64,000 bases of DNA, from assembly GCA_010909165.1 (NCBI GenBank), contig VJWM01000108.1:310001-374000 (forward strand), read 5' to 3'. Shown piece by piece: positions 7,401 to 64,000 of this stretch (its first letter is position 1; each line of letters opens with the position of its first letter). Both the position numbers and the translations under genes were made by a program. This stretch comes from Anthoceros angustus (Eukaryota > Plantae > Anthocerotophyta). Below the pieces are notes generated by a model that was not told the origin of the DNA, ran no database searches, and worked only from the letters and a program-made list of their open reading frames with translations.

Positions 7401-8353
7401 TAACTGCAGCATATGCTGAACAGGAGCAAGGAGATCGGGCTCTGCAACTGTATGCCCAGATGCACGCAGAAGGTGTGAAGCCAGATGCAGGCACTTTCCT
7501 TTCTGTCTTGAAAGCATGTAGCAGCATAGGATCCTTGGATGCCTGTGTGCACATCCACCAAGGTATTAAGGAAAGTCGATTGGAATGCAACCTTCTTGTT
7601 TCAAGTAGTCTAGTCAATGCCTACAGCAGATGTGGGAGCATGGTGGATGCTCAACTTGTGTTTGACACAATATTTGAGCCGGATGCCGTGTCATGGACAG
7701 CGCTAATTGCTGGGTATGCCAGATCCGGAGATGTTGGGATGAGCATCCGAACCTACGAGAACATGTGCCTGGCAGGTGTGAAACCGGACGGTGTGACGTT
7801 TCTCGCTCTTCTTTCAGCATGCAGTCATACTGGCATGGTGGAGAAGGGGCTGGAGTACTTTGAGAGCATGAGAAGGGACCACGATGTTTCGGTCCATATG
7901 GAGCACTATTCCTGTGTCATCGACCTTGTCCTTCGCGCTGGACTGCTTTGCAAGTCAGAAGAATTGTTTGAACAAATGCCGATGCAGCCTCCGCTGTCCA
8001 TGTGGCTCAGTCTGCTGAGTGCCTGCCGAAAGTATGGTAACGTTGCTCTGGGAAAACGCGCATTTCAAGCTGCTGTCCGAGTAGACCCGAGACATGCTGC
8101 CGCCTATGTGCTCATGTCAAATATCTTCCTTGATGCTGGCATGTGGGATTGTAGCAACAAGGTGCATGCGTTGAGACATAGTGCAGGTGCATGGAAGGAG
8201 CCTGGCCAGACCTGGATTCAGCACGAGCAGAAGGTGCACAGATTTGTGATGCACCCCGACGAGAGACACGACGAACAGACATCGTTGCACGCAGTGCTAA
8301 AGGATCTGAATGCAAAGCTGAAGACGCAGCAAGCCCTACACCTTCCAGTTTGA
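4404..8353 (+). CDS. PLS-class PPR protein, E-class (no DYW), ~1.26 kaa; model join(4404..4513,4666..8353)
   Basis: 1227-aa ORF of P-L-S triplets (VSWNAMI..., TFVSALQACG..., GNTLVSMYAKCGS...), then P2L2S2 and E1/E2 ending WKEPGQTWIQHE...; stop before any DYW domain. The upstream exon MRTDISL...GVRRMFASTCMR has donor AG|GTATTT at 4514 and joins in frame to acceptor TTGGCAG| at 4665. Further upstream exons are possible. Confidence 0.93.
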
Positions 8354-12900: not shown

Positions 12901-13673
12901 TTCCCTGCGTCTCGCTGCAGCGCATCCTGCGACCAGGCCACGAATGCGTGGAGCTCCGTGGCCGTGTCCGGGCGGGTGAGGAGGCGGGCCAGGAGGAGGC
13001 CGGCCAGCTCCCGCATCGCGCCGGGGCTGTGGAGCAGGTCCTGGCAGATGGCCACCACGGTGCGCACCATGGGAGACGCCTCCTGAGCTGAAGATGCCGC
13101 CATGGTGTCCACGGACGCCATGTCGAAGGGGATGAGGACGAGGATGGAGAGCCAGAGCAGGAGCGTGCACTGCGTCTCCCATACCCCGGTGCTTTCCTCC
13201 CGCAGGCTGCTGCCGGTGCCGGGCCCGGCGCCATCCTGCTGCAAGCACCGCTGCAGCAGCGCCACGGCGGGCTCCAGATCCGCGGCCTGGTGCGGGAAGA
13301 ACTTGACAACCACCTTGTGCCCGCACACCGTCATGAGCGCGTGCACGATGCTGCACAGACGCCGCACGGTGCTCAGATCTGCGTCCGCCTGCCGCTCCCG
13401 CACCAGCAGCATGAGCGGAGGGATCATGGCCTCCAGATGCGGCTCCAGCAACTGCCCTTCCTCCTGGTACTTGTCGATCAGCGCCTGCGCTCTCTTGAAG
13501 ATCGCTGCCTCAGCCGTCCCCCGCCCCACCACGATGCTCCCCACCATCTCCTCCAGCGCCTTCCAATCCTGCACGAACGTGCGGTAGTGTCCCGCCGTCT
13601 CCACCCGCTCCTCGCCCTCCCCGTCCTCCATCTCTCCTTCCCACTCGCTCCTCCTCTCCTCCGCCATCGCCAT
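9987..13673 (-). CDS. TBCD: Tubulin-folding cofactor D (TBCD/TFCD, TITAN1 orthologue), intronless, 1228 aa
   Basis: Single ORF with diagnostic TBCD motifs: [114 protein letters not shown]. Likely start MAMAEE at 13673. Poly-Q from a (CAG)n tract near 12540-12562. Confidence 0.96.
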   Translation of the reverse strand: [1228 protein letters not shown]

Positions 13674-14263
13674 TTCTTTCACTCCACAGACAGCAACGAC
13701 AAGAACCGAAACACAAGCACATAAAGCAAGTATGTACCTATGGAATATCACTACGGCTAACTAAACTGTAAATACGACCCACATCGCAACGAGTGTTTTG
13801 GTTGGATAACAGAATAAGATTCAGGTGTCGAATGTTCCGAGTTTAGTGCATGTTGATGGACAATGTATGAGAGCTCATACAACCTTGCACACCGGACTTT
13901 CCTTTTCTTTTTTAGTCAATTTATCTTTTGCTCACCCATTATCCTGGCTCAGGTGATGAGCCTTAACGTATGGTAGCGGTTGTAATATGCACAAGAAGAA
14001 GAAATATTGAAAGATTTTTTAGGTAGATATTTTGTGACCACATTGGCTCACCATCCTACACAATGGACATCCTTTTCTTTTAAGACAACTAGCTAGCTAT
14101 CCATGTCTAAAGATTAAAAAATTCTCTAGGAACTATGGATAATAATTATCCAAGGGTTCTCTTTGATTGAAGATTCAAGCCCTTAAAACTTTATAGCATA
14201 CAACTTCTCACTAGGCTTTAAGAATCATAGCCATTTAAGCAAAACCTACTCTCATATACATTA

Positions 14264-19347: not shown

Positions 19348-21498
19348 ATGCAGCAGCGATCGTTGGGGAGGGTTGAAGAGCAAATGGAGACACCCGCGGC
19401 AGCTCCATCCGAAGAGCCAGTTCCTGCGCAGGAGCACAGTAACGGGCATGGGAAAGATGCTGACAGGACAGCAGGAGATGGCGCGGGTGACGAGTTCGTG
19501 GTTTGCAACGGCGGGTCCGGCGAATCACAAGATGCATCCTCCCAGGCTGATGACAGGATTCAGAAGCTGACGCAGGAGCTCGCACAGGCTCGGAAGCAGT
19601 GGCAGGAGGACATCAGAGCACGAGATGACAAGTATGCAGAGCTGGACACCAAATTCGGGCGACTGCAGAAACGCGCGAAGCACCGGATTCAGGAAGTGCA
19701 GAAGGAGAAGGAGGAGCTGGAAGCGCGTGTTTCGGCAGCAGAGGATCAGGCAGCGCAGGCCACAACCGAGCAGTCTGCCTTGAAAAAGGATCTTGAAACG
19801 GCCAGGGCGCAGGTGCAGCAGTTGGAGAGCTCCACCTTGAGGCTCAGCAATGAGATCGAGGACATGCGGCGGGGATTGGATGCCAAGGAGCATAGCCTTG
19901 CCGAATCTCGTCGCATTGCGTCTGAGAAAGATCAAGCAGCTCTGGAGATGGCATCGGCTATGAAAGAGGCTGAGGAGAAGCATCAAACTGTGGTTGCGGA
20001 GCTGGCTGAGAAACACCGCAAGGCGTTGGAAGCTGTGGAAGCTCGGCTGAGTGATGCTGTGAAAGACGTAATTGGAGCATCCAAGGAGCGGGCAAAGCTC
20101 GCCGAAACGATATCAGATCTGCAGCTCCAGCTCGCGGACAGGGAATCCAAGCTCGCGGAATTAGATGCGGCGTCCAGCGGAGAAGCTGTGAGACTTGGTG
20201 CCTTGCTGGAAGGTACTAAGGGGGAGCTTGCAAGGCTTGAGCAGGAGCATAGGAATGCTCAGGAGACGTGGGAGGCGACTGTGGCAAAGCTGAATGCTAA
20301 GCTGGAGCAGGCTGAAAAGTCTCGTCTTGCTCAAGAAAGTGCCGCATTCGAGACGAAGAGCTGGCTGGAATCTGAATTGCAGCAACAGCGGCAGGTCATT
20401 TGCGGGCTTGAAGCAGATCTGGTGGAAGCAAAGGAAGAGACTGCCCATCTAGCAAAGGAGATGGCATCCTACAAGGTGCGGGCTCATGCTCTGCTGCAGA
20501 AGAAGGAAGCAGAGCTCATGGCTGCCGTCGATGCTGACCTGATTGCTGCTCAAGAGGAAGCCCTTCAGGAAGCTCAAAGGCAGGCTGCTGCAGCAGCCAC
20601 AGAGAAGGATCAGGCCTTGAAAACGCTGAAGGAGGCCATTGATGATTATGAAACACAACTGTCTACAAGGGAAATGGCGCTTATGGATGCAGAGCAGCGA
20701 ATCCGTGACATTGCCACAAAGCTGGAGCTTGCCAAAGGTCAGTTGGTGTCTCAGCGGGAGGAAGCGGACAGCCATTTCCGTGAACTGGAAGCTACCTGGC
20801 GTTCCCGTTGTGACGCACTAGAGGCGAAGGTGAAAGGCTTGGATGTGAGCAATGAACTGGCTTTGGTTCGGTCTAATCTCGACAGGCTGCAGGATGAGTA
20901 TGACTCCTTTCGAGCGATGGCTACCAATATGATGGAAGCCAAAGATCAGGAGATATCACGGTTGCTCGACCACAACACTAACCTTCAGAGGTCTATTCAG
21001 GCCCAACCACTAGCATCCAGTGTGGCAATCGAGAAGATAGTCTCGGAGCCCCAAGACTTGTCAGTATCGGTCGTTGCTGCAGCGGAGCAGCAAATACTGG
21101 TGTTGGCCAGGCAGCAGGCTCAACGAGAGGAGGAAGTTGCCCAGTGTCGCCGCCATATCCAGGCTTTGCAGGAAGAGATTGCTGAGCTAGAGCGGGAAAA
21201 TAGACTTCATGGTCAACAGGAAGCCATGCTCAAGGAAGAGCTTCGGAATGTGGAAAGAGCTAACAAGCGCGATGGTGTGGACCTCACATACCTGAAGAAC
21301 GTCATCCTCAAGTTGCTGGAAACTGGAGAAGTGGAGGTTCTTCTTCCGGTTGTGGCGATGCTGTTGCAGTTCAGCCCTGACGAGGTTAGACGGTGTCAAG
21401 AAGCTTATGGAGCTGCACCTGAGACGCCCTCCACAGTAGATCTTGCAGCTTCAACTCCACGGTCCATTCTCTCTAGACTGAGCTTCAGTGCGAGGTAG
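19348..21498 (+). CDS. GRIP: GRIP-domain coiled-coil golgin (AtGRIP-like), intronless, 716 aa
   Basis: Long heptad coiled coil. C-terminal GRIP domain GVDLTYLKNVILKLLETGEVEVLLPVVAMLLQFSPDEVRRC; conserved SYKVRAHALLQKK and AEQQILVLARQQAQREEE. Confidence 0.93.
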   Translation: MQQRSLGRVEEQMETPAAAPSEEPVPAQEHSNGHGKDADRTAGDGAGDEFVVCNGGSGESQDASSQADDRIQKLTQELAQARKQWQEDIRARDDKYAELDTKFGRLQKRAKHRIQEVQKEKEELEARVSAAEDQAAQATTEQSALKKDLETARAQVQQLESSTLRLSNEIEDMRRGLDAKEHSLAESRRIASEKDQAALEMASAMKEAEEKHQTVVAELAEKHRKALEAVEARLSDAVKDVIGASKERAKLAETISDLQLQLADRESKLAELDAASSGEAVRLGALLEGTKGELARLEQEHRNAQETWEATVAKLNAKLEQAEKSRLAQESAAFETKSWLESELQQQRQVICGLEADLVEAKEETAHLAKEMASYKVRAHALLQKKEAELMAAVDADLIAAQEEALQEAQRQAAAAATEKDQALKTLKEAIDDYETQLSTREMALMDAEQRIRDIATKLELAKGQLVSQREEADSHFRELEATWRSRCDALEAKVKGLDVSNELALVRSNLDRLQDEYDSFRAMATNMMEAKDQEISRLLDHNTNLQRSIQAQPLASSVAIEKIVSEPQDLSVSVVAAAEQQILVLARQQAQREEEVAQCRRHIQALQEEIAELERENRLHGQQEAMLKEELRNVERANKRDGVDLTYLKNVILKLLETGEVEVLLPVVAMLLQFSPDEVRRCQEAYGAAPETPSTVDLAASTPRSILSRLSFSAR

Positions 21499-23890: not shown

Positions 23891-24546
23891 CTAATCCACT
23901 TCCTGAAGCGGGGCCGCAACATCCTCGGCAGTGAATTTTCCCTTGCCCTTCTCTGCGGCTCGGCCCTTGCCCTTCCTGTCCAACAAGGACTTCCTATCCT
24001 TGTCGAGCTTCAACTTGGTGATGACCACCTTGGACGGGTGAATTCCAACGTTCACCGTTGCGCCTGCTCTCCCGCAAATTACATGCCATGATCAGTTCCG
24101 CACTCACCCGAGCACTGCTCTGCACACCTGAATCTCAAGAGGAGCACAGCAAACAGCTCAGCCACGAAAACCTAAAGCCATTACCGTTCACTTTCTCGCG
24201 CGTGATGCGCTCGATGTGCACAACCCACTTCCTTCTGTACACCTGGACAACCTTGCCCTCTTGCCCCTTGTGGGGTCCGCGCACAACCATCACCTCGTCA
24301 TCCTTCCTTACCGGAACGGACCGCACCTGCACAAAGCACGAATGATTCAATCACACAACAAACGGAAACGCGGGAATACAAAAGAACCCTAGCGAGGCAC
24401 ACAACAGGGACTCCTCTTACGTTGTACTTGTTCTTCAAGTCCGAAGACAGTCCGGCGCTCATCAAAATGCGCCTCACGCTCGACGGAGCCTTGAAGTGGT
24501 CCCGCCGAGACTTGCGCCTCGAGCTGCTCACTCTGCTGAATTTCAT
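23891..24546 (-). CDS. RPL26: 60S ribosomal protein L26 (uL24); exons 24546-24421, 24326-24185, 24063-23891
   Basis: [42 protein letters not shown]|[31 protein letters not shown]|[24 protein letters not shown]...EVD*; both introns GT-AG and in frame. Confidence 0.97.
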
Positions 24547-24894
24547 GTTTGCGCTGGATTAGCGACGGGCGCAGACGCTACGGCTGCGGAGGCGCAGAGA
24601 GAGGAGTTGGTGATGAACGTGTTCCCCCCTTTGTTCCAACAAGCCCCGTTTGATTTTAGGGTTCTGATTCTTCCTTTTAGGGTTCTCGGCGTAGGGTTTA
24701 CGCAAAACCCTAAGTAGGGGTCATGGAGCAAAATCCCAATTTGGAAGCTGCTGAGCTGAACTACGGGAGGGCACGGGTCTGTTAAGATGTGTTGAGGGAA
24801 CAAGGATTCCCAGTCGAATATGTGAGAAACGTCATACTGCGGACAGACGGGAACTGGACATGCAATTCCATCCTTTTTCCTTCCCAAGTACGCA

Positions 24895-25529
24895 TTTGAT
24901 TCGCACCCAAGTTTGACAGTGAGGTCACGAACTCGTCGCCCCACAACAAGATCCTTCTTAGCTGCACGCAATTTGAGCACGGTGTAAAACAGAGACTGAG
25001 GAATAGCAGAATCTGTGTGCGCCAGGGTTTCCAGGGCTGCAACGGCCTCAGAAAGCTTCCCCTGCTGACAAAATATGCTCACGGTTCCAGCCGTTACGAC
25101 GCCCATTTCCGATCCCGGATGCCTGCCAGGTTCAGGCTTATCCGGAGAGCTCGACTTGGAAGGAGAGCCAACATGACCCATCCGCTTATCCAAGGAAACG
25201 AGCTGCTCATCAACCCACGCTGGCTCAAACGTGTTGCTTAACCGCAGGACCTCGCCGGACTGGAAGTCAGGCGAACGGGCAAATTTCTTGTCTCGTCTGT
25301 CGTCCCACCACATGGCAGGGTGCAGAAAAAACTGTTGCCACAAGTGCCCCTGCTCCTGGCGACGACCAGCGCTGGAATCTCCATTCCCACCCACACATTT
25401 TCTCACAGCTGGATCCGCTGGGCTCCTTTCACTGCTGCACATCCATGGAGGCTTGGTTGTTTGCCAGGGGTTCACTCCCTTGGGTGAGGTGAGCGGGAGC
25501 TCCTGGTACAATCTCTGTACACACACCAA
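24895..25529 (-). pseudogene. Truncated PPR gene head carrying an OSB-type PDF motif
   Basis: HLWQQFFLHPAMWWDDRRDKKFARSPDFQSGEVLRLSNTFEPAWVDEQL is followed by IFCQQGKLSEAVAALE..LFYTVLKL..KKDLVVGRRVRDLTVKLGCESNAYLG (first PPR motifs). Homology then stops abruptly near 24895. Confidence 0.7.
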
Positions 25530-28567: not shown

Positions 28568-31176
28568 ATGTCGATGCCTCCACCTAGGACATGTGCTGTC
28601 CATGCACAACACATCCCTCCCCATCCTGTGTCGTTCTCCCCCGGGCGCCTCCAGTTCCTACAACAGGATCATCACACCAAGGTATTGGATTCCAAGTATT
28701 CGGCTTCTCCCTCTCCGTTGCAGTTCCAGAAGCAGCTAGCCAGACCGGTTGGGTTGAAGAGCCGCAGTGGCAGTATCAGGTCTGACTGACAAACTCCGTT
28801 GTGGTTTGGTTTGGTTTGGTTTATTCGGTTGAAATGTGCATTGCTAGCGCACAGCCATGTTGTTGGATCAGCTGCAGCTTTGTGGTTGTTGAGAAATGTG
28901 TTGGCAGGATACCCAGCATCTCTGAAGGGGCGTATGAAATGAAAAGCCTCTGTAATGAGGGCCGTCTGGATAAGGCCATGGATTTTTTGCAAGGCATGGA
29001 TCGGGAGGGCAGTGTGCCTTCCAAGCGCATATACTGGTACCTTCTGCAGGCGTGTGTACGACAGCGGGCCTTGGCCGAGGCTAATCAAGTTCATGCTCAT
29101 ATGGTCAGAAATGGCATGGATTCGGATCCGTTTCTTGGCGAGACGCTTGTCAACACGTTGATCAAGTGTGGGGGGCTTGCGGATGCCGTTCAGGTTTTCC
29201 AGAGGCTTCCGCAACGGACTGCATTCTCTTGGACTGCTCTGATGTCAGGGTACTGTAAGGCTGGAAGAGGGGAGCAGGCACTGCAGCTGTACGAACAGAT
29301 GCAGGAGGGAGGTGTGCAGCCGGACCGATACACCTTTGTCAGTTTACTGAAAGCTTGTGGCAGCGTAGCAGACCTGGAGAAGGGCAGGCGGATTCATGCA
29401 CAAGTTGTGCTTCAGGGATGTGGTTCTGAGCTTTTTGTGGGCACTGCGCTGGTGGATATGTATGCCAGATGTGGGAGCATGGCAGACGCACAGCAAGTGT
29501 TTGACGATCTGCCCGAGCACGACGTGGTGTCATGGACCGCCATGATTGCAGGATATGCCCAGCAGGATCAAGGAGAGGAGGCCCTGCGGATCTATGCCCA
29601 GATGCAGCAGCAGCAGTGTGTCTCTCCTAATGCGCACACGTATTCCAGCCTGCTGCAGGCCTGTTCCAGCCTCGCAGACAAGGAGGTCAGTGTCTTGGTA
29701 GATGGCCAAGCCGTCAAATTAGAGTCTCTGGAAAGGGGAAAAACAGTGCATGCTGCGGTGGTCAGTGGAGGCTATGAATCTGACCTATTTGTGGGCAGCG
29801 GACTAGTGACAATGTACGCCAAGTGTGGGAGCATTCAGACTGCGCAAGCTATTTTTGACCGGCTGTCGACGAGAGATCTAGTTTCGTGGAATGCAATGCT
29901 TGCAGGATATGCTCAGCAGGAGCAAGGAGACAAGGCGGTGCAACTCTATACCCAGATGCAGCCTCTAGGTGTCTGTCCAAACGATCGGACATTTGTCAGT
30001 GTGCTTCAGGCCTGTGGCAGCCTTGCAGACAAGGAGGACCGTGTCCTTGTGAATGGGCAAGTCCTGAAAGCAAAGTCTTTCAGGATGGGGCAGGCAATAC
30101 ATGCTGATGCTGCCCGAATGGGTTACGAGTCCAACCCGTTTGTGGCCAGCACTCTGGTGGGTATGTATGCTAAGTGTGGGAGCATTTTGGACTCGGAGCG
30201 TGCGTTTTGCAAAGCGTCCAGGCATGATGTGGTCGTATGGAACTCGATGCTAACAGCTTATGCTCTCGAGGAACGGGGAGAGATTGCTCTACAGCTTTAT
30301 GCCCAGATGCAGGTGGAAGGGGTGAGACCTAACAAGACTACGTACTTGTCTGTTCTCAAAGCGTGCAGTTACACCGGTGCCCTCAACATCTGCTCTCAAA
30401 TCCACAGGAGTATCATCGACTCTGGATACGAGCAGAGTCTTCCAGTGGCAACGAGTCTTATTCATGCCTACAGCAAGTGTGGCAGCATGATGAATGCCCG
30501 GGAGGTGTTCCGTACAGTCCTCCAGCCGGACATGGTGGCATGGAATGCACTGCTTGCTGGCTATGCTCAACAGGGGGAATACGAAGAAAGTGTGCGCTGC
30601 TTTGAAGAACTGTGCAACGCCGGCATGCAGCCAGATGGAGTTGCGTTCCTTCTACTCCTCTCTGTCTGCAATCATGCTGGCATGGTTTACAGTGGTTTAC
30701 AGTATTTTGAATCCATGACCAAAGATTATGGCATCCCCGCTGGAATTGACCACTATTCAAGTGTGGTCGACCTGGTCGGCCGTGCTGGGCTCCTGAGCAA
30801 GGCAGAGGCTTTGCTTCTTAGGATGCCAATGCAGCCCGACTATTCAATGTGGATGTCCTTGCTTGGAGCCTGTCGGAAGTATGGCGACGTACATGTTGGA
30901 CAGCGTGCTTTTGACTGTGCTGTGCGCCTGCAGCCAAAGGAGGCTGCACCATACGTGCTCATGTCAAGCATCTATGCTCAGGAGGGCTTGTGGGAGCTTG
31001 CAGGGGAAATGGAACAGTTGCGACAAAGAGCAGGTGCTTCTAAGCATCCTGGCCACAGCTGGATCGAACATGAGAATGAGGTGCACACCTTCGTGGTGGG
31101 AGACCGCAGGCACAAGCAAAGTGACCAAGTCTATGGAATGCTGCAAGAACTGAATGCAAAACTGGAGAGCACATAG
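28568..31176 (+). CDS. PLS-class PPR protein, E-class (no DYW); model join(28568..28779,28908..31176)
   Basis: 791-aa ORF of PLS triplets plus E1/E2 ending KHPGHSWIEHENEVHTFVVGDRRHKQSDQVYGMLQELNAKLEST*. The transit-peptide-like exon MSMPPPRTCA...KSRSGSIR joins via AG|GTCTGA ... TTGGCAG|G in frame. Confidence 0.93.
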
Positions 31177-37258: not shown

Positions 37259-40109
37259 TCAGCTGATATCTTGCCGGTGTCTCTTCCTTCTCTTGGCTAT
37301 CTTTCCGTTCTCAATGACCTCTTCCAGGTACTGGAGAACCTCCTTCAAGCTTGCCTTCCTGTACTGTTCAAAATTGAAAGCAACAGGCACAGGATATCTC
37401 CCACTGGAGTTGAATTCCTCTAGCTCGCTGAGCGCATTTGTGACGGTTTTGCACACAGCTTTTCCCAGCTCTTGCCTTAACAAGAGCAGCCTCTTGTCAT
37501 CCTGATCAAGAACCTCCTGCCATTTTAGCGAAATCACAGTAATGAAGCTGAGATCTAGATCATGCCATAAGCCGATGCGATGCAGTCTTAGACTAGGGAC
37601 GATCTGGCACCTTCCATTCATCCTCATCTCCCACGGGAACCACTTTAAAAGGCCGCCAATCGGAGCTCCGCACCAGCTGCTCCCATTCGGTAGAAATCCG
37701 CAAGAAGTGGGATTCCCAGCCGTCCTTGTACTTCCTTTTACAGGCGACTTTCCAAGGAGCACTGTCTAGCTCTCCCATCCGTTTCACTCCAATTCTCTCC
37801 CTGGAACCATGCTTTTCGAGTATCTGCCAAGGCCGGATGAGCACATGAAATTCAGGGAGGAGCGAATGGCAACGAGGTTTCCGAAGGAAACAACTGTAAA
37901 GAGTCACAAGGCAGCACCTCCACGGCCACCCTTCTACTCAGCTCAAGCTCCTCACTCATTTCCCGTTCTTTGCGAAGTAAGGAGTTCACCATTACGTGCA
38001 AGCCATCCTTCTCGTCTGTAACCTCGTTCAGCCTGTCTTGTAGGAAAACCAGGTCCAGGGGCTGACTTTCATTCACCTCTCTTTTGACAGTGGCAGTACT
38101 CTCCGAAATTTGTTTGTCCGGAGAAGATTTGCCAGAATCCTTCCCTTGGGAATGCTCAGATCGGAGCTCCTTCTCTCCACCAATCTGGAGAAGCATCGTG
38201 GATAGAGGCTTCATGAAGAAAAGTTTCCAGCGATAACCCCTCTACACAAAAAAAAACTCAAATCCTGCATGCAGACAAAATCACGAGGAGCACTGCGAGG
38301 ATTGAACTCGCAAAGTCTTGCTTTGTAGCAAGCACATAACCACCAGATTCGTGCCCATAGGTGCAACAAGCGATGATGTACAAGGATGTACACCAACTGA
38401 CCTTCTGTTTCTTCACCAGCGCCCGCAGCTTCTCGAGCTCAACCTTGTGCTGGGTCGCCTCCCACATTTTCTTTTTATGCAACTCCTGTAGTCCCTTCAG
38501 GTCCCTCTGTCACAATCGGCGTCCAAATTTGTCATATCCTGCGGGCAACCACAGCATTGCATTGCGGGCAGTAGGACAACTCCCTGTCTTTGTAAAAGGA
38601 GCCTGACTTGAAATGAGCACACCGAGTTTACCTCATGCTTACGGATGAGATCAGAGTATGTCTTTTTGTGAGACTCCGAAAGTATGTGCATACGCCTCTG
38701 CATCTGTTCAGCGGAGATATATATCAGAACCTAGAATACAGAATGTTTCCTTGAAAGAAGTGCTCTTGTTCTGACCATTTGTGCACCCGGCTCCGATCAT
38801 TCCACATACCTCTCTTCTTGCACTTTCGTTCTTCTTCCGCTCTGCTTCGAGTTCAACTTCGAAGCCTTTCAACAGGTTCGCCTTCTCCAACTTAGTGTGA
38901 TTACACTCATCCTGAATCTTCTTCATGTCCAAGTTCAGGCTTTCCAATTCTGTTTCCCCGAACAGTAAGCCCTCTCTCAGACTACGTCTAGGGTCACCTG
39001 AGGACCCGACTCAGCAAAGGATGGCGGATGGATGGATGGTTGCAAATTCGCGCAATCATACCAGATTTGTGCACTTCTGCAAAGTGCACTTGCTCCTCTT
39101 CCAGTCTCTTTCGGGTCTTCTCGGTCACAAGCATGGCATTCTGGAGACCTTCTACCCTCCTGTCAAGAGCCTGCAGTTCCTTGTTCTTGGCTACCAGCTC
39201 GCTCTCCAGGCACTGCACTTGATGCTTCCACTTTTCTGCAGTCGTGTCCACTGTATGCTGGAACCTCTGGCTGTACTTCTTCATCTTCTCTTCACCAACG
39301 CCGGCAACAGTCTTGAGCTCCCCGTAATCGAAGAGGAACTTCCCAACAGGACTGTCCGCATAGTAATCTTCCCGACGGGCCACCCATCCATACAAGTCTT
39401 TGCAAGGGTTGCAATGCGAAGCATGTCTAATTTTTTCCCACTCCTTCCTCCCACGCCCCGACTGCAAAAACCTCATCTCCAAAGCATCCGCATCACAGAA
39501 GGCCTCCAAATCCCTTTCGAACATAATCGCCGCCACCCCGCTAACAGACTGAGGCTCGGAAGCCTGGAAAAGCTTCACTTCTTTTGGGTTGAAGACATAA
39601 AACAGCCTCTTCAGCTTGGCCTGCCACAACTCCGCGCTCAGCTGCCATCTCCCAACATCGAGATTGACCACGACCACCACCCAAGGGTACACAAACTTCT
39701 CCTCCTCCCTACTCCGCCGCGCCATCCCCTGCTCCAGCCTCAAGGGGCCGTCCGCCCTGGCAAAGAGCTCCAAGGTCCTTGCGATGAGGTCATCACCGCT
39801 ACCTCCGTCCCCCCGCTCGGCACCAGCCGCAGCACCCACCTCGGCCGCCGCATCCTCAGCATGGAGGCCAGATCGCAGCCTTCCTTCCCGCTGCGAGCTA
39901 CACTTGGAGGAGGACGGCAGGCCGGAGGACCCAGATAGGGCATTGGAATGCTGCTGCTTTCCCCCGGTGCTCGCAATCAGGTCAGGAGAAACGGCCGAGG
40001 CCGTAGCGCATCCGGGCCGCTCGTGCCCATCACCTGCCCCTGCCCCTCCCTGAGCCTTGCCGTTCTTCCTGTGCCCACCAGCCCCGCCAGAGGCCGAGAA
40101 ATGCCTCAT
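37259..40109 (-). CDS. XS-coiled coil-XH protein (IDN2/FDM family, RNA-directed DNA methylation), multi-exon; a further upstream exon (to ~40996) is possible
   Basis: XS domain EEKFVYPWVVVVVN...GRGRKEW...LYGWVARREDYYADSPVGKFL..GELKTV, long coiled coil, XH domain IGVKRMGELD..DWRPFKVV|..DDKRLLLLRQELGKAVCKTVTNALSELEEFNSSGRYPVP. No zf-XS seen. Confidence 0.88.
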
Positions 40110-41574
40110 GCCCGGGCTCACCGCAGCACAAAAAGAGCAACCCGGCAGCAGCAGGAGCAACAAGACCCATCTCCTGCCTTCCCGCAACACCCATAGCAAC
40201 GTGCCTGCTTTCTCGGAGGCACGTCCCTTGAAGCCCTTCCCACTGCCAGGAATCCCAGATCCAAGTGTCTCAGATGGACGACGCCCAAGGGCCAAAACCC
40301 CAAAACCCCAAAACGGCCACTCCGAACACTCCGCCTCCCCATCCGTCGTGATGCATGCGGACAAAGGACAGCAAGCTCCAAACGGAAGGTTAGTCAGCTC
40401 GGAATCCGACAGAGGAAATCGAAGGGGGCAAGGCAGCACAAGGATCGATCGAGGTTGTTGCACAGGTGTTGGAAGCAGCAATTCAGGGATTTCCCAAACC
40501 TCCGTTGCACGCTGCGCATGCAGCCGCTGGAAGCGTGCCTGAAAAGACAAAGCAGTGGTCCCATGCCACAAACCGCTTCCGTTCGTTGGCACGGCCCCTT
40601 CCGCCCCCTGCCACTTCGACGGTGGAGACGGTCCTGACCTGTTTGACTCGTACCTGCCCGGGACCTCACCAACAACGCCAACTCCACACCCACTGGCGTC
40701 CGCTTGGCCGCCAGCCTCGCCAGATCCGGACAGCCGCGACCTGGCGCGTGGCTTATAAGGTGGGGGCCGCAATCCAGCACTTGCCGCAGTTTCGAGTCGT
40801 CCCAGCGTCTCGGAGCAGCTCCTTTCTTCCCTGCTCTCCCTCCCTGCTCTCTCGCATCAGCCAGCCTCTGGGAGCTAGCAAGGCCTTCCTTGCCTGATTG
40901 AGTGCTTGCTTGCTCGCTCTCGCTTGATTGATTTGAGTCCAATTTCTGTCGAGTGAACAATCGACAGTCAGTCACTTCTTGCTTGAATCCTGTCATCGTA
41001 TCAGACTGTGAAGAAGGAAGATTCAGAGTCCGTAGATGCTGCTGCCTGGATTGCCAGAATCTGCGGTTGCTTGGATGAGCCTTGCCTGTTGAAGAAGCCA
41101 GATTTCGTGCCTGTTTGCTCGCTTTCCTGCTGCTGTCTCTGGAGAAAAGGAGAAGAAGAAGAACAAGATGGCGGCCAGTGCTGGAGGAATGAACTCTTTC
41201 ATCAGTGCATGCGCTTCCAACTCTGCCTCACAGCATCCTTATCACAAGCACTGCGGATGCGCAATTCATCGCCTGTTGAACGGCGCTCACACCGGCAGAG
41301 GTGGATGCCAGGTGCGGCTACCGGGACGAGCTTTCGAGCCCGTCTCGCTCTGCACTCCTGGAAAGAAGCTGACGCACACGCACCCGGCGGATGTGGTTCG
41401 GCCAGGGTGCGACGACGTTTTCCCGTCCTCCTCCCAGGAGGCAGAAGCTCGTTGCAGCGACGACCACATCTTTCTGGTTGCCGGCTTGGTGGACGAGCAG
41501 GAACGGAGCTCGGTCGTCTTGTGAGGAGGAAATGCGGGAGCTGTAGATCCATTTTACCATTGCTCCAGATTATG

Positions 41575-43247: not shown

Positions 43248-46034
43248 TTACAGGTAATTGCGAGAGTCTTTAAGCTCTACGCTTAAGGCTTTCAGAAATT
43301 TCGACAGCTCTGATTCTTGTTTATGCCTTTTGTCCCCCACCTCGAACGAGTGCACCTCCTGCCCATGCTCAATCCAGCTTCGCCCAGGCTTCTTCCAATG
43401 GACCGCATTCTGTCTTAACTCATCCACTTCTCTGGCAGAGTTCCATAGGCCAGCATTGGCATAGATGTTTGACATCAGTACATAAGCTGCAGCATGACCA
43501 CGATCTATGCGGACGGCGCCATCAAAGGCACGCTCTCCCACTATCACATTACCGTGCTTCCTGCACGCTCCCAGCAAGCACAGCCAGACTGGCAAATCGG
43601 GCTGCATTGGCATACATGCAAGTAGCTCTTCTGCCTTGCTGAAAAGTCCTGCACGACCAACGAGATCAATCACACAAGCATAGTGCTCAAGTCCTGCACA
43701 AATGCCGTGAAGCCTGCTCATGTTTTCAAAGTACTCCAATCCTTTGTCGACTTCACCAGCATGACTGCATGAAGACAGGAGCGACAAGTAGGTGACTGCA
43801 TTTGGTGTCACGCCTGCCAGGCACATGTCCTCGTAGAATTGCATACTCAATTCACAAGCTCCCACTCGGGCATATCCAGCAAGTAGTGCATTACATGCTG
43901 GCACATCAGGCCGAGGCAGGGCGTCAAACACACTGCGAGCATCCACCATACTCCCACATTTCCCATACGCATAAATCAGACTAGTTGGCAGGGATGAGCT
44001 GACCTGCCATCCTCTATCCATTATACTTTGGTGGATGCGCCTGCACACATCTATGGCCCCTGTACTGCTGCATGCCTCTAGCACCGAGATAAATGTTCCT
44101 TCATCTGGCCTCACACCCTGTGCTTGCATTTCTGCATACAGCTGCAAAGCCTTGTCTCCACGTTCTTGCTGAGCATAAGCTGTGATCATGGCAGTCCATG
44201 ACACTACATCCTGCTGGGATAGGAGGGCAAAAATATCTTCTGCATCCTTGATGCTGCCACACTTTGCATACATACTAACCAAAGAACTACCAACGAACAT
44301 ATCTGTTTCCAAACCCAGGCTCACAGCTTCAGAATGTAGAGTCTTGCCCTGTCGCAGGGAATTTGCCTTGACAGCCTGCCCATTTACTAGTGCACTGCAC
44401 TCTTTTTCTGCCACTAGGCTACAAGCTTGAAGAGCACTTACTAGCGTCCGGGCGGTTGGCCTGACACCTTCCTCTTGCATCTGCCAATATGTTCTCAAGG
44501 CTGTTTCTCCATTTTCTACCTGAGCATAAGCAGCAAGCATTGCATTCCATGCAACTACATTACGCTGGGATAGTCCATCAAATACCTGCCGGGCTTCGTC
44601 AATCATCCCACATTTTGCATACATACTGATCAAGGTGCTGCAAATAAAAATGTCTGATCCAAATCCGTGCACTACAGCATCAGCGTGTATCCGCTTGCCA
44701 GCTTCCAGGTCCTCCAGTTTACTGCATGCCTTGAGTAAGCTGACAAAAGTGTAGTTGTTAGGGTCTACCCCTTCGCTTTTCATCTGGTCGTAGCAGGAGA
44801 GGGCCTCCTGACATAGCCCAGCATTGTTGTACCCTGAAATGACCGCTGTCCAGCAGTAAACTGTTCTGTATGACAATCGTCCAAACAACTGGAGCCCATC
44901 TGCAAGGCTGCCACAGTGAACCAGTGTTGTGACAATAAGATCACCCAGAAGTCTGTTGGTCTCCAACCCATTCTTCAGCAAATGAGAATGTACCCGCTTT
45001 GCCTCTGCGAGAGCCTTCCTTTTCATGCACGCCTGCAAGAGGTTCCTATACGTGCGCACAGAAGCGACAACCTTTCGCTCATCGAGGAGATGCAAGACAG
45101 CTAGAGCCTTGTCGAGAAACCCCTCCTTACACAAAGTCTCTAATTCCCGTACATCCTGAGCGACAGTTCGGATGCTGCAAGAGAAAAGATAGGCAATCCC
45201 GCAGGTGAGGTTGAAGTACAAACTCATTCTTTGCACACGTGCGATATTAGCTACAGACGGAGGGTAGGTAATGTGCTTGCAGATGGCACAAAGATTTCAG
45301 ATACCTTCTACTAGCTGTGGGACGCTTGACTGCCTGCAGTTGAATCTCAAGAACGGCCACCCGACGATCCAACCACAGGCCAACCTTTGACCTCTTCCTC
45401 GAGAAGTAAAGATGGCAAGCACTTTTCTGCAGGTAGATGGCGGACCACCTCAGGATGAGAACTGCAGTGCGGCAAACTGTGGAGCACACCGAGCGAAGAG
45501 AACCAATCTCACCACACTGTGGTAGCATCCATCAGACAAGTGATAGGCCACTGAAAAGGGAGACAACAGGCATACCTTTTCGAGTGTCGGCGATATCTCA
45601 GATTTCGCTCTGCAAAAGAAGCTCCTCTTAATTTCGGTGACTGAGCCCATTCTTAATCTCGTCTCCTACTTTGAGCGGATGTTTGCAGCATCCGCCAAGT
45701 TCACATTGCCCGGGTCTCTACAGCATCTGCCGCATCCACACCAGCTCGTCCTTCTGTCACCAGCGTGTCTGAAATCTGGCCAGCTAGGGGCACATCGTCG
45801 CCAGTTTCCAACACGGCCCCTTTTCTTCGTTTTGTCTTACCTGAATTTCCCTTCCCTCTCACGACTGTGGCTTGTTCTTGTACAGACAGGCTCGGGCGGT
45901 GCTGGGGTCTTGCCTGGCCGCCGGCTCGGCTTCTTTCGGATGCCTCCCCGAGCAGCCAGGCCTCCCCGAGTCTTCGCACTTCGTACTCGGGCCGCAGGCT
46001 CAGCAATCGGGGCTGAGTCGATCACATCCGCCAT
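43248..46034 (-). CDS. PLS-class PPR protein, E-class (no DYW); model join(46034..45841, 45174..43248)
   Basis: 662-aa ORF of PLS triplets plus E1/E2 ending WKKPGRSWIEHGQEVHSFEVGDKRH...LKDSRNYL*. Strong acceptor TTTTCTCTTGCAG at 45175; the upstream exon MADVIDSAP...GKF(AG|GTAAGA) joins in frame. Extra micro-exons (e.g. 45611-45577) cannot be excluded. Confidence 0.9.
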
Positions 46035-56200: not shown

Positions 56201-59200
56201 AATCAATTTATGTTGGCCTTCAGAACGGCGGTAGCGATGTATCCAAGCGATAAACCACCAGGGTAGTTGGGTTGCTCCTACAAGAGAAGTTGGAGAATTC
56301 CTTCAAGAAGGAAAAGAATGAAGACTCGGTGCTCTTCTCAAAGAAGGGAACAACACGTGGGAAGACTTCACAAGCCAACTGTGAAGAAGAATCGAAGGAG
56401 AAAGATGTGAAGAAAAAGGTGTAGGGTACTTGCCATTATTGCACGAAGCCTAACCACTGTGCCAAGCATTGTAGAAAAAGGTTTGCCGACTTGAAGAAGA
56501 AGGGAAAGGAGTCACAAAGCCAATCAAGTGAGTAAGGAGGAAGAACATCTCTGTGCTATCTCAACCGTAGAAAGGGTACTAACAGCGCCCATCAAAGAAG
56601 GATGAGAGTTTGTACCTCGACTCTGGAGTGTCTCAACACTTCACCTACAACTGTCCTTGGTTCTCAAGCTATGAAGAAATGACGGCGGGGTATAAGGCGG
56701 TGTTTGGAGACAATAGGTCACACGAGATGAAAGGAAGAGGTGTGATCAAAGTTCAACTCCCTAGAGGACCATCCAAAGGTACAATCAAGGATGTACACTA
56801 TGTGCCTAGTCTTGCAAAGAATCTCCTTTGAATAGCGAGAATCAGTGACCCAAAGAATGAGATTTGTTCAACTTGAGGGGATGTCGCATCCAATCCGAGC
56901 AACCCAAATCATCTAATATCAAGGTGATAGCTCAAGGAGTTTGAGAAGGCAATTTCTACAAGTTGTGTGCTTTTGTAGGTGATCAACAAGCTTGCACATT
57001 TGTATCAAGCTCGCCTGAAAGCACTGGGTCAATAGACTTGTGACATCATGGCTTGGGGCACACTGAGGTGGACAACATCAAGATCATGAAGAATCAACAA
57101 ATGATGAGGGCTTGGGTTTGAAGGAGATTGGTGAGCTGCGATTATGCTAAGGGTGCATAATAGGAAAGCTTTACCAAACCAAGTTCCCAAGGATTGGAGC
57201 GCGTTGAGCGACAAAGGCGTTGGAGCTTGTACATACCGATGTATGTGGACCAATGAAGAACCTTAGACATAGAGGAGCCTGCTACATTTTAATGTTTGTG
57301 GATGACTTTAGAAGGAGGAGTTGGACAAGTCTGTTCAAGAAGAAGTCTGACGTGTTCAAGACGTTCAAGGAGTGGAAGGTCGTGGTGGAGAAAGAAAGTG
57401 GAGAATGCCTCAAGACTCTGAGGAATGACAGTGGAGAAGAAAATCTCTTCTTAATTCTAAAGCTTTTGCAAGGAGCATGGCATTCGGAAGCAACTAACAA
57501 TTCTTCACACACCAAAGCAAAATGGAGTGGCGGAGTGCAAGCGAAAGAGCCTAGTGGATGCAGCTAAGTGCATGCTCATTAAAGTGGGTTGAAGGTACGT
57601 TATTGGGGAGAGGTTGTTGCTACAATAATTTATGTTTTGAATAGAGTTCGAACCAAGGCTGTACCTGGAATGACTCCAAAGGAGACATGGTTTGCTGTTA
57701 GACCCGACGTGAGTCATTTTAGGATCTTTGGTTCTGAGATTTATGCTCATGTTCCAAAGCAAAACCGAATTAAGTGAGATCCTAAAGGCATCCAGTGCAT
57801 CATGCTTGGGTACTTCGATGAGGTAAAAGGGTATAGATTATATGACCCTACAACCAAGAAAGTTATCTTTAGTAGGGATGTTGTTTTTCATGAAGTTGTG
57901 GAACCTAACAAGTAGTGGGAGCAACGCAAATTGTCTTAAAGGAATTGAAGGAGCGTGAAGAAGCACAAGACTTGGTTCTTGAGCAACCAACTCTTGAGCA
58001 TGCTAAATTTGTTCCTGAGCATGAATAACCTCTACCATAAGGCGACATAGAAGGTGGAGCTTCAAGGTGATGAAAATCTTCGTAGAAAATTTTAAAGTCC
58101 ATGGGTATGCAACATGCAAGTATGAAGAGGATCTGTTGGCAGATGTTGATAATTCGCAAAGCTTGAAGGAAGCCTTGGAAGCGTCAAAAGTGAAGGAGGG
58201 GGAGGAAGCCCTGGATAGTGAGTCTAACTCACTCATTAGGAACAAGACTTGGGAAATCACTCCTCTACCCCAAGCAAGGAAGTGTAAGCCTGTGAAGACA
58301 CCAATGGTGCTAAATGAGAAGCTCTCAAAGGAGAAGAGTCCTACAATTGAAGAAGAGAAGGAAAAGGTAGATAAAACTCTCTATCAGTGCGTTATTGGTT
58401 GCCTCACTAACCAATAGTACACTACAGGGACAAAGGCATGACATTGCAAAGGCAATGAAAGTTGCAAGTCAATTTATGACTAACCCTGGACAACAACAAG
58501 TTCAAGCCGTGAAAAGAATAATGAGATACTTGAATGGTACAAAGCATTGGAATATGGTGTATCAACAGGAGCATCACGGGAAGTCCGAATGGTAGGATAT
58601 TGTGATTCAGACTAGGCAGGAGATGTTGATAGTTGCAAGTCTACCACTGGATATGCGTTTATGTTGAATAGGGGAGTCATTTCTTGGAATAACTCTATCC
58701 TTTACCGAAGCAAAATATATGGCATACATGCTCTGTAGTCATAGAGACGATATGGTTGCGTAACTTGCTAGAAAAGATGGGATTCAAGCAAAAAGAAGCA
58801 ACAAAAATCTTTAACGATATCAAGGTTGCATCAGAAGGTCAAGTCAAAGGAGGTAAAACTAAAGTATTGTCCAACAGGAGATATGCCGGCAGATATTTTG
58901 ACCAAAGGCTTAACTTTAGACAAACATGCTAGGTCTAGCAAGATCCTAGGCCTAAGGGAATAATTTTGATATGTCGAGTGGGAGTGTTATAAATAATTTA
59001 GTATAATGTATCAAAATATATTTTGAATAGTGCCCTAAAATCAGGTGATGAAGGGTGCCTTAAAAATAACAAACTTGTATACCTTTCTATATCTTCTAGA
59101 AAGCCCCAGAGTAAAAGTGCAAGTCAACAAACCAACAGGATTCAAGGATAAGGACTATATAAGACCAAGCCCACCTATGTGTGGGGTTGTGGTGTGTGCA

Positions 59201-59678: not shown

Positions 59679-60796
59679 TTAAGAGTGGGGTACGGGGATT
59701 GAAAAGATCTCAGGGATGTGGGCGTTTGTGTATTTAGTGCGTTTGGATTCACGCCTCTTAGGCTTCTCCTTTGGCTTCTGCTGTGATCTGGGTAAGCCGG
59801 CCATGGTGTTCCGTCTTGCAGAGTTGGTGGCAGGCTTCATACCCGCCTTCATCAACTCCCGCTCCACATCAACAAACTCCCTAGGCAACTCAACGCCCCT
59901 AACAAGCTGCTTGAGGTCCTCGTCCACCTTGATCTTGATATTAGGGTCATTGGGATATACCACTTCTTCCTGGGAGTCGCTGTTTGTGAGTACCCACACC
60001 TCCCCAGCAGCCTTCAATTCCTGCATCGGCAGAGGGCCATCCGTGAGATACCACTTCCTCCTGGACCGCAAATCTCACGAAATGACCACCAATTCCACCT
60101 GCACATCCTGCACCACTCCCACATACGAGTCCTTCAAGTCTCCTAGAGGAATGCCATGCGGATCCGTCCGAATGCATCTAAGCAGCTCCGCCTTATTCTT
60201 CAGGTCATGTTTAGACTGCGCAGCAAAGCCCTCATCTCCGTCAGCTCACCGCTGCCTGAGATAAACAAACCGACGTGGCACATCTTTCTCTCCCTACCTT
60301 ATAGCAAAATCGTCGCCCGTCATAGGCAACCTTAGGATTGTTCTGCAGGCTCTCGAACACCTCCTTGTTTGCCTTGACATCGACATAGCATAAATCATTG
60401 ATTTCCTCCGGCAGCAGATTCTGCCGAGTCTGGAAAGCAACAAAGCACAATGTGAACACTTCCCCTCCTCCTCCTCGACCTTAAACTCTTTCTCCTTCAC
60501 CCGAATGGACAAGAGCTTGCCTCTAAAAGAACCCCTAGCACTCGCTTGATCTGTGCTCCCACAGGCGACTTCCGGATGGTGGCAATTTGCTGCAGCTTGT
60601 CTTGATCGTTGGTGAAGGAGAACCGATTGGCAAAGGGCACCACGGGCTGTGTCGCCGGAGGGGGCTGCGGCGGCTTCCTGGAAGCGGAAGTGGAAGGTTT
60701 CGCCTGCTGAGTGGCAGGACGAGCTGTCTTCGACAGCGAGGCCTGCAGCTTCGCCTGCTGCTTGTGGTATTGAGCCAATTTCTCGTGCAAAGCCAT
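59679..60796 (-). CDS. GTF2E2: General transcription factor TFIIE beta subunit; exons 60796-60521, 60429-60298, 60215-60099, 60020-59679
   Basis: MALHEKLAQYHKQQ...RKSPVGAQIKRVLGVLLE|TRQNLLPEEINDLCYVDVKANKEVFESLQNNPKVAYDGRRFCYK|SKHDLKNKAELL..GIPLGDLKDSY..|ELKAAGEVWVLTNSDSQEEVVYPND..TNAHIPEIF; all junctions in frame, intron 1 is GC-AG. Confidence 0.92.
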
Positions 60797-61312
60797 AGTC
60801 CTGCGCTCTACTGCGCGGAGCAGCAAACCCAAGCCTTCAGGTTCCAACGAGCCCAGAATGTTCAAGTCCCCCGTATTGACTGTAATAAAAGCTTTCTTAG
60901 ACAAACCCTAAAAAATGCACGGTTTAGAGACGTTTGCGAGACTGAGAGCCTGGACGTCCGAGGAACGTGCCATGCTTGCCTAGAGCAGCCCATCGTAATT
61001 CCTGATGTGTTCCCCTTCCGAGGCCAGCTTTGACTATGCGTTGTGTTGTCCTCAGAAAATGTTCGCGAAGTATGTGACGCAAAACGAAGAAGCCTCGGAC
61101 CTTGCCATGCAAGTTTGATACGGAAGCTGGAATTTACTGAGAAGAATACGAAGGGTTCCTCAGCTCCAGGACATCAAGTCAGGTATGTTGCCTACCGCAT
61201 CCTTCGATCATGTGAATAGCAACGAGCAACCGTTCAATGACAATTCACACAGAAGCCGAAGCCATCCTTGAACGGCGTACACGGTTGAGCATAGGCTAGT
61301 CCTTCATTTTTC

Positions 61313-64000
61313 TCACGGTCGACCATTACAACTGCAATAACCATTTGTGAATCGATGCACACGGTAGCCATCCCTTACAACAATGTATCTTTGTTCAAGC
61401 CTTGACATGATCTCCGTGGAACTGTGGCAGTCACTGCACATGCGTAGATTCTTGGTTACCACCAGAGGTGTTCCACTGGGAGTGTTCAAGAGGCCAAAAG
61501 CCAGAGCTAGCTTCTCAGCATGTCCACAAAGCGCATCTTCCTTTCCCTTCTCAGACAGTGGCTTCAGCACCAACTTCGTGTGAGGTACGTGACCTCCTTC
61601 CTGCTTCAGACGCGCATTGGTGCTCTCTACCTTGAGCGCAATATCCTCTCTACTTTCTCCCACCAGAAATCTATGTACCTGCTTATTCACCTCAATAGTA
61701 GTAACTGCAGGTTTCTTGTTAGCTCCTGCTAACCTTCTCTGTGTTTCAATCCTGTCTACATCGGTCCACCTACCGGCATCTGCGTAGGCATTGGCCATGA
61801 GCACATATGCGGTCGCATCCTGGGAATCCAGCTTAACAATGCTTTCAAAGCACCACATAGCCCTCTCTATATCCCCGTGAATTTTGCAGGCATTCAACAA
61901 AGACGTCAAGGCCACAACATCACTTTGGCCCTCACATGATAATAGCATCTTCTCTGCCTCATCTAAATGGCCAGCACGCCCAAGAAGATCAATCATGCAA
62001 GTGTAATGCTCAATAGTAGGTTTGATGCCATGCTGTTCAGCCATTGAATCAAAGTTCTTGCGACCCTCACGGACCAGTCCCCCATGACTGCATGCTGCTA
62101 GAAGGGAGGTGAAAGTAGCACCATCAGGCTGAATACCGGCAACTAACATCTCCTCAAAACAAGCTAGTGCTCTCTGACCATCATCACAAGTACCATACCC
62201 AGATATCAGGGCATTCCATGTCACCGCATTCTTTGTGTTCATGGTGTCAAAAACCTGACGTGCATCGTTCATTTCACCACATTTTGCATACATGTCCACC
62301 AGGCAGGTACCCAACACTACGTTATCGAGCAGTCCTCGTCCGACAATCTGTGAGTGCAGCTGCCTGCCCTTCTGTAAGGCACCAGTGCTTCCACAGGCCC
62401 TCAGAAGGCATGCAAAAGTAACATGGTTAGCTAAAAGCAAGCCCTCCTGCTCCATTTGTCCATACACAACAAGCGCCTCATGTCCGAGCCCTTGCTGTGC
62501 ATACCCAGCAATCAGGGTGGTCCATGTCACCACATTCTTTGTGGCCAAGCTGTCAAAAACCTGGCGGGCATCTTTCAGTTCACCACATTTTGCATACATA
62601 TCCACCAGGCAGCTGCCCACCACGACGTCAGCCAGCAGTCCTCTTTCGACAATCTGTGAGTGCAGCTGCCTGCCCTTCTGTATGGCACCGGTGCTTCCAC
62701 AGGCCTTAAGAAGGCAAGCAAAAGTAACATGGTCAGCCAGAATAAGGCCTGACTCCTCCATTTGTCCATACACAAACAGTGCCTCTTGGCCGAATCCCTG
62801 CTTTGCATACCCAGCAATCAGAGCAGTCCATGTCACCACATTCTTTGTGGACAAACTGTCAAATACCTGGCGTGCATCCTTCAGTTCACCACATTTTGCA
62901 TACATGTCCACCAAGCAGGTGCCCACTACTACGTCATCCAGCAGTCCTCTTCAACTACCAGTGAGTGCAGCTGCCTGCCCTTCTGTAAGGCACCAGTGCT
63001 TCCACAGGCCTTCAGAAGGCAAGCAAAAGTAACATGGTCAGCCAAATGAGGCCCTCCTCCTCCATTTGTCCATACACAACAAGCGCCTCTTGGCGAGTCC
63101 TTGCTGTGCATACCCAGCAATCAGGGTCCATGTCACCACATCCTTTGTGGCCAAGCTGTCAAAAACCTGGCGTGCATCTTCCAGTTCACCACATTTTGCA
63201 TACATGTCCACCAGGCAGTTGCCCACCACGTGTCATCCAGCAGTCCTCTTTCACAATCTGTGAGTGCAGCTGCCTGCCCTTCTGTAAGGCACCAGTGCTT
63301 GCACAGGCCTTCAGAAGGCAAAAGTAACATGTCAGCCAAATGAGGCCCGCCTCCTCCATTTGTCCATACACAACAAGCGCCTCTTGGCGAGTCCTTGCTG
63401 TGCATACCCAGCAATCAGGGCATCCATGTCACCACATCCTTTGTGGCATGCTGTCAAAAACCTGGCGTGCATCTTCCAGTTCACCACATTTTGCATACAT
63501 GTCCACCAGGCAGGAGCCCACCTCTACTTCATCCAGCAGTCCTCTTTTGACAATCTGGGAGTGCAGCTGTCTGCCCTTCTGTAAGGCACCGGTGCTTCCA
63601 CAGGCCTTCAGAAGGCAAGCAAAAGTGACATGGTTAGCCAAAAGGAGTCCTTCCTGCTCCATTTGTCCATACACAACAAGCGCCTCATGTCCGAGCCCTT
63701 GCTGCACATAACCTGCAATCAGGGCAGTCCATGTTACCACATCCTTTGTGGCCAAGCTGTCAAAAACCTGGCGTGCATCTTTCAGTTCACCACATTTTGC
63801 ATACATATCCACCAGGCAGTTGCCCAACAAAACACCATCCAGCAGTCCTCTTCAACAATCTGTGAGTGCAGCTGCCTGCCCTTCTGTAAGGCACCAGTGC
63901 TTGCACAGGCCTTCAGAAGGCAAGCAAAAGTAACATGGTTAGCCAAAATCAGGCCCTCCTGCTCCATTTGTCCATACAGACAAGTGCCTCATGTCCGAGC
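61313..64000 (-). CDS. PLS-PPR-E-DYW protein of the DYW:KP (GRP) subclass, candidate U-to-C RNA editing factor; 5' part outside the window and frameshifted upstream of ~62950
   Basis: C-terminus KKPAVTTIEV...HVPHTKLVLKPLSEKGKEDALCGHAEKLALAFGLLNTPSGTPLVVTKNLRMCSDCH...CSCNGRP*. HxE and CxxC zinc ligands are intact, with the KP motif, HAE instead of HSE and a GRP end. Preceded by ~306-bp PLS triplet repeats. Confidence 0.92.

Follow-up and report, generated by a model that had tools for sequence, protein, structure and literature searches.

Does a hornwort gene fragment that ends in a complete DYW:KP deaminase domain belong to a working U-to-C RNA editing factor, or is it what is left of one? 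To our knowledge, native U-to-C enzymes have had no biochemical characterisation, and only consensus-designed DYW:KP proteins have been proven active. The designed proteins stall as RNA–protein crosslinks in bacteria. A natural domain of the GRP type is a reasonable thing to test, and the window analysed here (64,000 nt of Anthoceros angustus contig VJWM01000108.1, positions 310,001–374,000; all coordinates below are counted within it) holds one near its end, described in an original prediction as the intact domain of a candidate natural U-to-C enzyme. The domain is complete by every feature of its sequence; the gene is frame-broken 5′ of the open frame as assembled. We consider it probable that the locus is the 3′ two-thirds of a PLS-class PPR gene that was recently disabled and now stands as a pseudogene or 5′-truncated remnant.

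A predicted GRP-type DYW:KP domain at the end of the open frame

The open frame lies on the minus strand at 61313–62926, where the ORF listing and a three-frame translation gave 537 codons ending in TGA (61313–61315, directly after Gly-Arg-Pro). Motif-by-motif segmentation resolved it into the order S1-P1-L1-S1-P1-L1-S1-P2-L2-S2-E1-E2, followed by a DYW domain of 133 residues, and Pfam matched PPR (E = 4e-60) and E_motif (E = 2.1e-15) to the same frame. From its 5′ end, the minus strand carries seven in-frame motifs (S1, P1, L1, S1, P1, L1 and S1; 62228–62926) with the code pairs TN, TD, AD, SN, TN, AN and TN, a P2-L2-S2 triplet (61919–62227) with the pairs ND, TT and TD, and the PPR-like motifs E1 (61817–61918) and E2 (61715–61816), both recovered by the segmentation and by the E_motif match. 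The first S1 motif is without its first two residues; no defect is seen in the last ten PPR motifs or in the catalytic end.

The hallmarks listed in the original prediction were all seen in the minus-strand translation of 61313–61800: KKPAVTTIEV (61688–61717), LVLKP (61559–61573), HAEKLA (61505–61522, within GHAEKLA and including the catalytic Glu), CSDCH (61424–61438) and the terminal GRP (61316–61324). This interval holds the whole domain and is wider than it: the domain proper occupies 61316–61714, and the rest takes in most of E2. Further features are the KPA box, TKNLRMC (61436–61456), whose K is domain residue 88 (Lys88), STE (in CHSSTE) with Glu at the position equivalent to K103, HRFTNGYCSC, and CNGRP directly before the stop. 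Both zinc sites are present, HxE...CxxCH being formed by HAE and CSDCH, and H...CxC by HRFTNGYCSC.

The domain was classified by Pfam, by a KP consensus and by comparison with solved DYW domains. DYW_deaminase (PF14432) matched ORF residues 445–535 with E = 1.5e-31, far beyond chance in a 537-codon frame. Homology to three solved DYW domains, 9KFX (E = 9e-45), 7W86 (4e-30) and 7O4E (1e-26), settles the predicted fold as deaminase-like. In the alignment with the PG-type domain of 9KFX, a four-residue gap, typical of KP domains, falls where PG domains have the xHP stretch. Set against the consensus of 30 KP and 37 PG relatives, the query tracks KP, not PG, column by column, and it departs from KP columns conserved to at least 80% at three places only. 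Two of these, the Glu of CHSSTE and the Gly of the last triplet, are the GRP-subgroup signature; at the remaining one, the KPA box has Thr instead of Ala. KP domains are recognised by a KPA-type box in place of PG, HAE in place of HSE and a length of 132–133 aa without xHP (PMC9478123, PMC11845758). The proposed GRP-type DYW:KP class is borne out by the HAE Glu, the CxxCH ligands, Lys88, the 133-aa length without xHP and the Glu at the K103-equivalent position; judged by its sequence, and at the domain level, the query carries every distinguishing feature of that family.

Relation to known DYW:KP and DYW:PG proteins

A search of a large protein collection with the E2+DYW part of the query found 76 relatives. 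The 30 closest share 45–65% identity over E2+DYW, carry GHAEKLA and a KPA-type box, and end in GRP (P0002–P0004), mostly in DRH, or in other non-DYW triplets; among the more distant ones, classical HSE/PG/DYW proteins from seed plants predominate. The three natural GRP-ending proteins P0002–P0004 are 56–60% identical to the query over all 537 residues and up to 68% in the DYW domain. The protein collections, searched over lengths of 295–940 aa, yielded no close orthologue (more than 70% identity), the best match reaching 60% over the ORF and 68% over the DYW domain. Intact GRP-type relatives are collinear with all 537 residues (0–4 gaps) and extend N-terminally by a further 220–485 residues, among which the targeting sequence presumably lies. 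The nearest full-length relatives checked are 753–1019 aa long, and one of the GRP-ending proteins, P0002, is a complete gene of 871 aa that occurs on two independent contigs.

PMC9478123 presents GRP and DRH as the two hornwort DYW:KP variants, credits the hornwort GRP-variant proteins to Gerke et al. 2020 and Gutmann et al. 2020, and describes how, in GRP proteins, Glu takes the place of the Lys that is paired with the C-terminal Asp. Like these GRP-variant PPR-DYW:KP proteins, the locus has a PLS array, P2-L2-S2-E1-E2, a 133-aa DYW:KP domain, the KPA box, GHAEKLA, Lys88 and CxDCH, as well as Glu in place of Lys at the K103-equivalent position and a C-terminal GRP; unlike them, it has no open 5′ part, start codon or targeting peptide. 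In small deviations from the residues of GRP proteins, the query reads RDGYRVH for RDAHRVH and CNGRP for CGGRP. The hornwort DRH variants (for example P0001, P0005 and P0007–P0015) have the same architecture and KP hallmarks and are 55–65% identical over E2+DYW, but they end in DRH, keep Lys at the K103-equivalent position and have Asp in the last triplet. With the DYW:PG C-to-U factors OTP86 (7O4E) and DYW1 (7W86) and the synthetic PPR-DYW protein (9KFX), the query shares the fold family, the zinc ligands, the catalytic Glu and the active-site Lys, whereas the PG box, HSE, the xHP stretch (136 aa) and the DYW terminus of these factors are replaced in the query by KPA, HAE, the four-residue gap and GRP. 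Assignment as a canonical DYW:PG C-to-U factor was rejected on these four differences.

Predicted chemistry and target

By homology, a PPR protein of such a family would enter an organelle, where its PPR motifs would read RNA at one nucleotide per motif with S2 at position −4. The zinc deaminase-like domain would then turn uridine into cytidine, with Lys88 attacking C4 and the Glu of HAE assisting. A lysine–uridine Schiff-base mechanism has been proposed (PMC11332814), and Lys88 is essential for U-to-C activity (PMC11845758). For the domain of this locus we infer U-to-C chemistry. That it would instead act in the C-to-U direction, or both ways, is conceivable on the grounds that the designer protein KP6 performs both reactions, that single substitutions flip the direction, and that no activity has been established for natural KP proteins (PMC11845758). 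Against this, the GRP-based designers KP2 and KP3, built from the GRP consensus, gave U-to-C editing of 26% and 22% in E. coli with zero C-to-U editing (PMC9478123), and the query keeps Lys88, so we rate a C-to-U activity as very unlikely. What the original prediction had drawn from the literature, namely that DYW:KP domains are restricted to lineages with reverse editing and that designer PPR-DYW:KP proteins edit U-to-C heterologously, holds.

The ten pairs of fifth and last residues on which a target had been predicted were reproduced exactly by our segmentation. Read from S1 to S2, with S2 at −4, they give A-G-n-A-A-n-A-U-n-G; the PPR code had been rightly applied, but the result has only seven informative positions and leaves the broken upstream motifs out of account. 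By our own estimate, seven informative positions would be matched by chance about once in 16,000 nt, so that chance alone should produce dozens of matches in organelle genomes a few hundred kilobases long. The seven positions cannot single out a target site, and the broken upstream motifs would have given most of the target specificity.

Broken tandem units upstream of the open frame

The open frame is whatever remains 3′ of the last frameshift. Its listed start is a GTG within an S motif, and its first in-frame ATG (62903–62905) encodes the Met of VDMYAKCG, likewise within an S motif. The frame is bounded by an in-frame stop at 62951–62953, eight codons upstream, and PPR similarity carries on past this point in another frame. 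As assembled, the 537-codon frame has neither a start codon of its own nor a targeting (transit) peptide.

Expression from the internal Met at 62903–62905 would yield a PPR-DYW:KP protein of 530 aa without a transit peptide, cytosolic or mislocalised and with a residual or new role. The long intact frame does need explaining, and a 445-nt RNA-labelled contig spans the 3′ end of a closely related copy (97%) together with the downstream flank of that copy. However, the Met sits in the middle of an S motif, many out-of-frame ATGs lie upstream of it, no relative begins at that point, and an exact RNA contig for the locus is absent among those listed. We regard this possibility as very improbable.

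In a three-frame translation of 62927–64000, the PPR array goes on upstream of the open frame in shifting frames and past the end of the window, with stops present in all frames. Tandem Repeats Finder identified a 306-nt repeat, equal to one P1-L1-S1 triplet, in six copies matching at 88% between 62194 and the end of the window; anchored on the word GACATGTATGCAAAATGTGGT, the unit lengths are 306, 295, 300, 306 and 306 nt. Deletions were called by aligning the units, with the in-frame units u4, u5 and u1 as reference. On the minus strand, decayed unit u3 (62927–63208 upstream of the open frame; the unit spans 62909–63208) has 1-nt deletions at 62951/2, 63044/5 and 63094/5 and a 3-nt deletion at 63126/7. 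Its neighbour u2 (63209–63503, minus strand) is 295 nt long instead of 306 and has seven 1-nt deletions and one of 4 nt. Unit u1 (63504–63809, minus strand) has the full 306 nt and is open internally, in a frame that differs from that of the 3′ ORF, and it is unbroken although flanked by decayed units. The partial unit u0 (63810–64000, minus strand), in which the array leaves the window, has 1-nt deletions at 63852/3 and 63978/9. Frame-breaking deletions total 13 within these 1,074 nt.

Three of the deletions (CTC^GCC, ATT^TGG and G^AAGAGG) occur at identical positions in the neighbours u2 and u3, and one of the three is also found in u0. Units u2 and u3 are 95.6% identical, compared with 86–91% for other unit pairs, which together with the common deletions indicates that an already broken unit was duplicated. 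On the unit alignment, the common deletions are taken to reflect genomic history, not random sequencing noise. Most deletions fall outside any run of one base or within runs of two or three, and not in long homopolymers.

Downstream, no break occurs in the 1,614 nt between 62926 and the stop, against about 18–20 expected at the upstream break density. This speaks against a decayed gene: the 3′ part would either have been orphaned very recently or still be under selection.

Could the gene be intact after all, a functional native GRP-type U-to-C factor in which the frameshifts of 62927–64000 are assembly or polishing errors, or decayed units lying in an intron or 5′ leader? Several observations speak for this. 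The 537 codons of the 3′ part are flawless and match the family consensus at conserved positions, save for the Thr in the KPA box and the GRP-subgroup changes; u1 is unbroken in the middle of the broken region; and introns occur in some hornwort PPR genes (PMC13386178). On the other side stand the thirteen deletions themselves, one of them of 4 nt and several outside homopolymers, and the three that are common to two adjacent units of 95.6% identity. Five other long frames in the window, about 13 kb in all (PPR-E+ frames of 1227, 791 and 662 aa, a TBCD frame of 1254 aa and a GRIP-domain frame of 716 aa), are without frameshift. Because these frames are unbroken, and given that the deletions lie mostly outside long homopolymers, a general assembly indel error is unlikely. 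Assemblies and polishing fail most often in high-copy tandem repeats, which counts against reading the units as decayed. Weighing these points with the read data below, we hold an intact gene to be possible but unlikely.

As assembled, no start codon, no organelle-targeting N-terminus and no continuous frame was found for the array, whose 5′ end lies beyond the window. With these elements missing and 13 frame-breaking deletions in the 1.07 kb upstream, the proposal that the locus is a candidate natural enzyme could not be upheld, whereas for the domain sequence it stands.

Read support and transcription

Read contigs were mapped at 90% likeness, with depth summed over paralogous contigs and thus not specific to the locus. 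In each run, 5,800–28,900 contigs matched the PPR part, with a summed depth of 10^4–10^6, compared with about 10 for the single-copy flank in X2, a DNA run of the source organism. Contigs of X2 match 60003–61336 almost exactly and end where the DYW coding region begins. X1, an RNA-labelled run from the same sample, contains exact contigs for the exons of the neighbouring TFIIE-beta gene. Over the PPR ORF, no exact RNA contig was found among the X1 contigs listed, a set that at 90% likeness is flooded by paralogues.

At the frameshift sites, most X2 contig depth, summed over paralogues, shows the deleted state, and the frame-restoring insertion accounts for 3–50%. These depths suggest that the deletions exist in short-read data of the same organism, which argues against an intact gene. 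Nor did the RNA-labelled run of the source organism, again with depth over paralogues, contain a skip joint fitting splicing over the decayed units. The share of the frame-restoring insertion was larger in X1 than in X2 at eight of the eight sites compared (for example, 75% versus 22% at 63093).

The share of ORF 31-mers found in RNA runs was 0.29–0.44 and similar in several species; such likeness across species marks them as conserved family words, not as a signal specific to the locus.

Over 61339–64000, the summed depth of contigs of at least 90% identity is about 1,000–5,000 times the single-copy depth in the DNA run of the same organism, and about 30% of the exact 31-mers in the DYW/E region are common to runs of several other species. 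The gene family is unusually homogeneous at the nucleotide level.

Probable route of inactivation

Our preferred explanation remains a recently disabled pseudogene or 5′-truncated remnant, and the arrangement of the units bears on how it may have arisen. Several of the 306-nt units, each a PLS triplet, carry frameshifting deletions, and some of these deletions were themselves duplicated; the loss of the gene probably came about through unequal crossing-over or ectopic conversion involving dead members of the family. We read the mosaic of decayed and pristine units as the product of such unequal crossing-over or ectopic conversion in a huge and very homogeneous family.

A wider proposition, which we put forward as doubtful, is that either GRP-type U-to-C editors are being lost wholesale in this lineage, through ectopic exchange with a pool of dead copies and with expression left to an intact minority of the genes, or the locus is a working native GRP editor with a mis-assembled 5′ part. 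Wholesale loss would fit the mosaic of decayed and pristine units, the many genomic paralogues with the same frame-breaking deletions and the enrichment of the RNA-labelled pool for the frame-restoring state at all eight sites compared.

Hornwort genomes hold 1,583–2,308 PPR genes each, with 2,308 in Anthoceros agrestis, and the E+ PPR subgroup is reported to be enriched only in hornworts (PMC13386178). The GRP terminus of the query and the three intact E+ PPR genes elsewhere in the window point to a hornwort origin. The locus is an ordinary copy of a very large, already described family with hundreds of like genes and offers nothing beyond other copies; the idea that it is special as a source of a native domain does not stand. 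In practice it is useful in two ways only, as a well-preserved sequence of a natural domain and as an example of decay by tandem-unit exchange, and target assignment is better served by an intact paralogue.

Neighbouring genes in the window

Three further PPR genes of the PLS class, all intact E+ ORFs, lie at 4670–8353 (plus strand), 28801–31176 (plus strand) and 43248–45236 (minus strand). Counted from non-ATG or first starts, they encode 1227, 791 and 662 aa; each has a PG-type box (KEPGQTWIQ, KHPGHSWIE or KKPGRSWIE) ahead of a truncated DYW. Open PPR genes thus do occur in this assembly. An N-terminal PPR fragment at 24543–25529 (minus strand) comprises LWQQFF...WWDDR...SPDF and the first PPR helices before passing into unrelated sequence; a similar motif stands at the N-terminus of P0003, a GRP-type relative.

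About 400 nt downstream of the DYW:KP stop, TFIIE-beta-like exons (59679–60904, minus strand) gave weak Pfam matches to TFIIE_beta and TFA2_Winged_2. A second TFIIE-beta copy, 5–10% divergent, is present in the DNA and RNA contigs of the same sample, and an X1 contig over 60994–61439 (97% identical) contains the 3′ end of a related DYW:KP copy with its flank. The second copy points to a segmental duplication that took in the 3′ end of a DYW:KP gene. Degenerate copia-type integrase and reverse transcriptase pieces in several frames at 57220–58600 (plus strand) form a decayed retrotransposon adjoining the TFIIE-beta gene; the piece tested from this interval gave no Pfam match.

An intronless ORF of 1254 aa at 9987–13751 (minus strand) encodes a tubulin-folding cofactor D (ARM_TBCD and TFCD_C) and lies in a block of about 63% GC, against a window mean of about 49%. 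Two ordinary nuclear genes are represented by a GRIP-domain ORF of 716 aa at 19348–21498 (plus strand) and an XS-domain ORF of 592 aa at 38994–40772 (minus strand).
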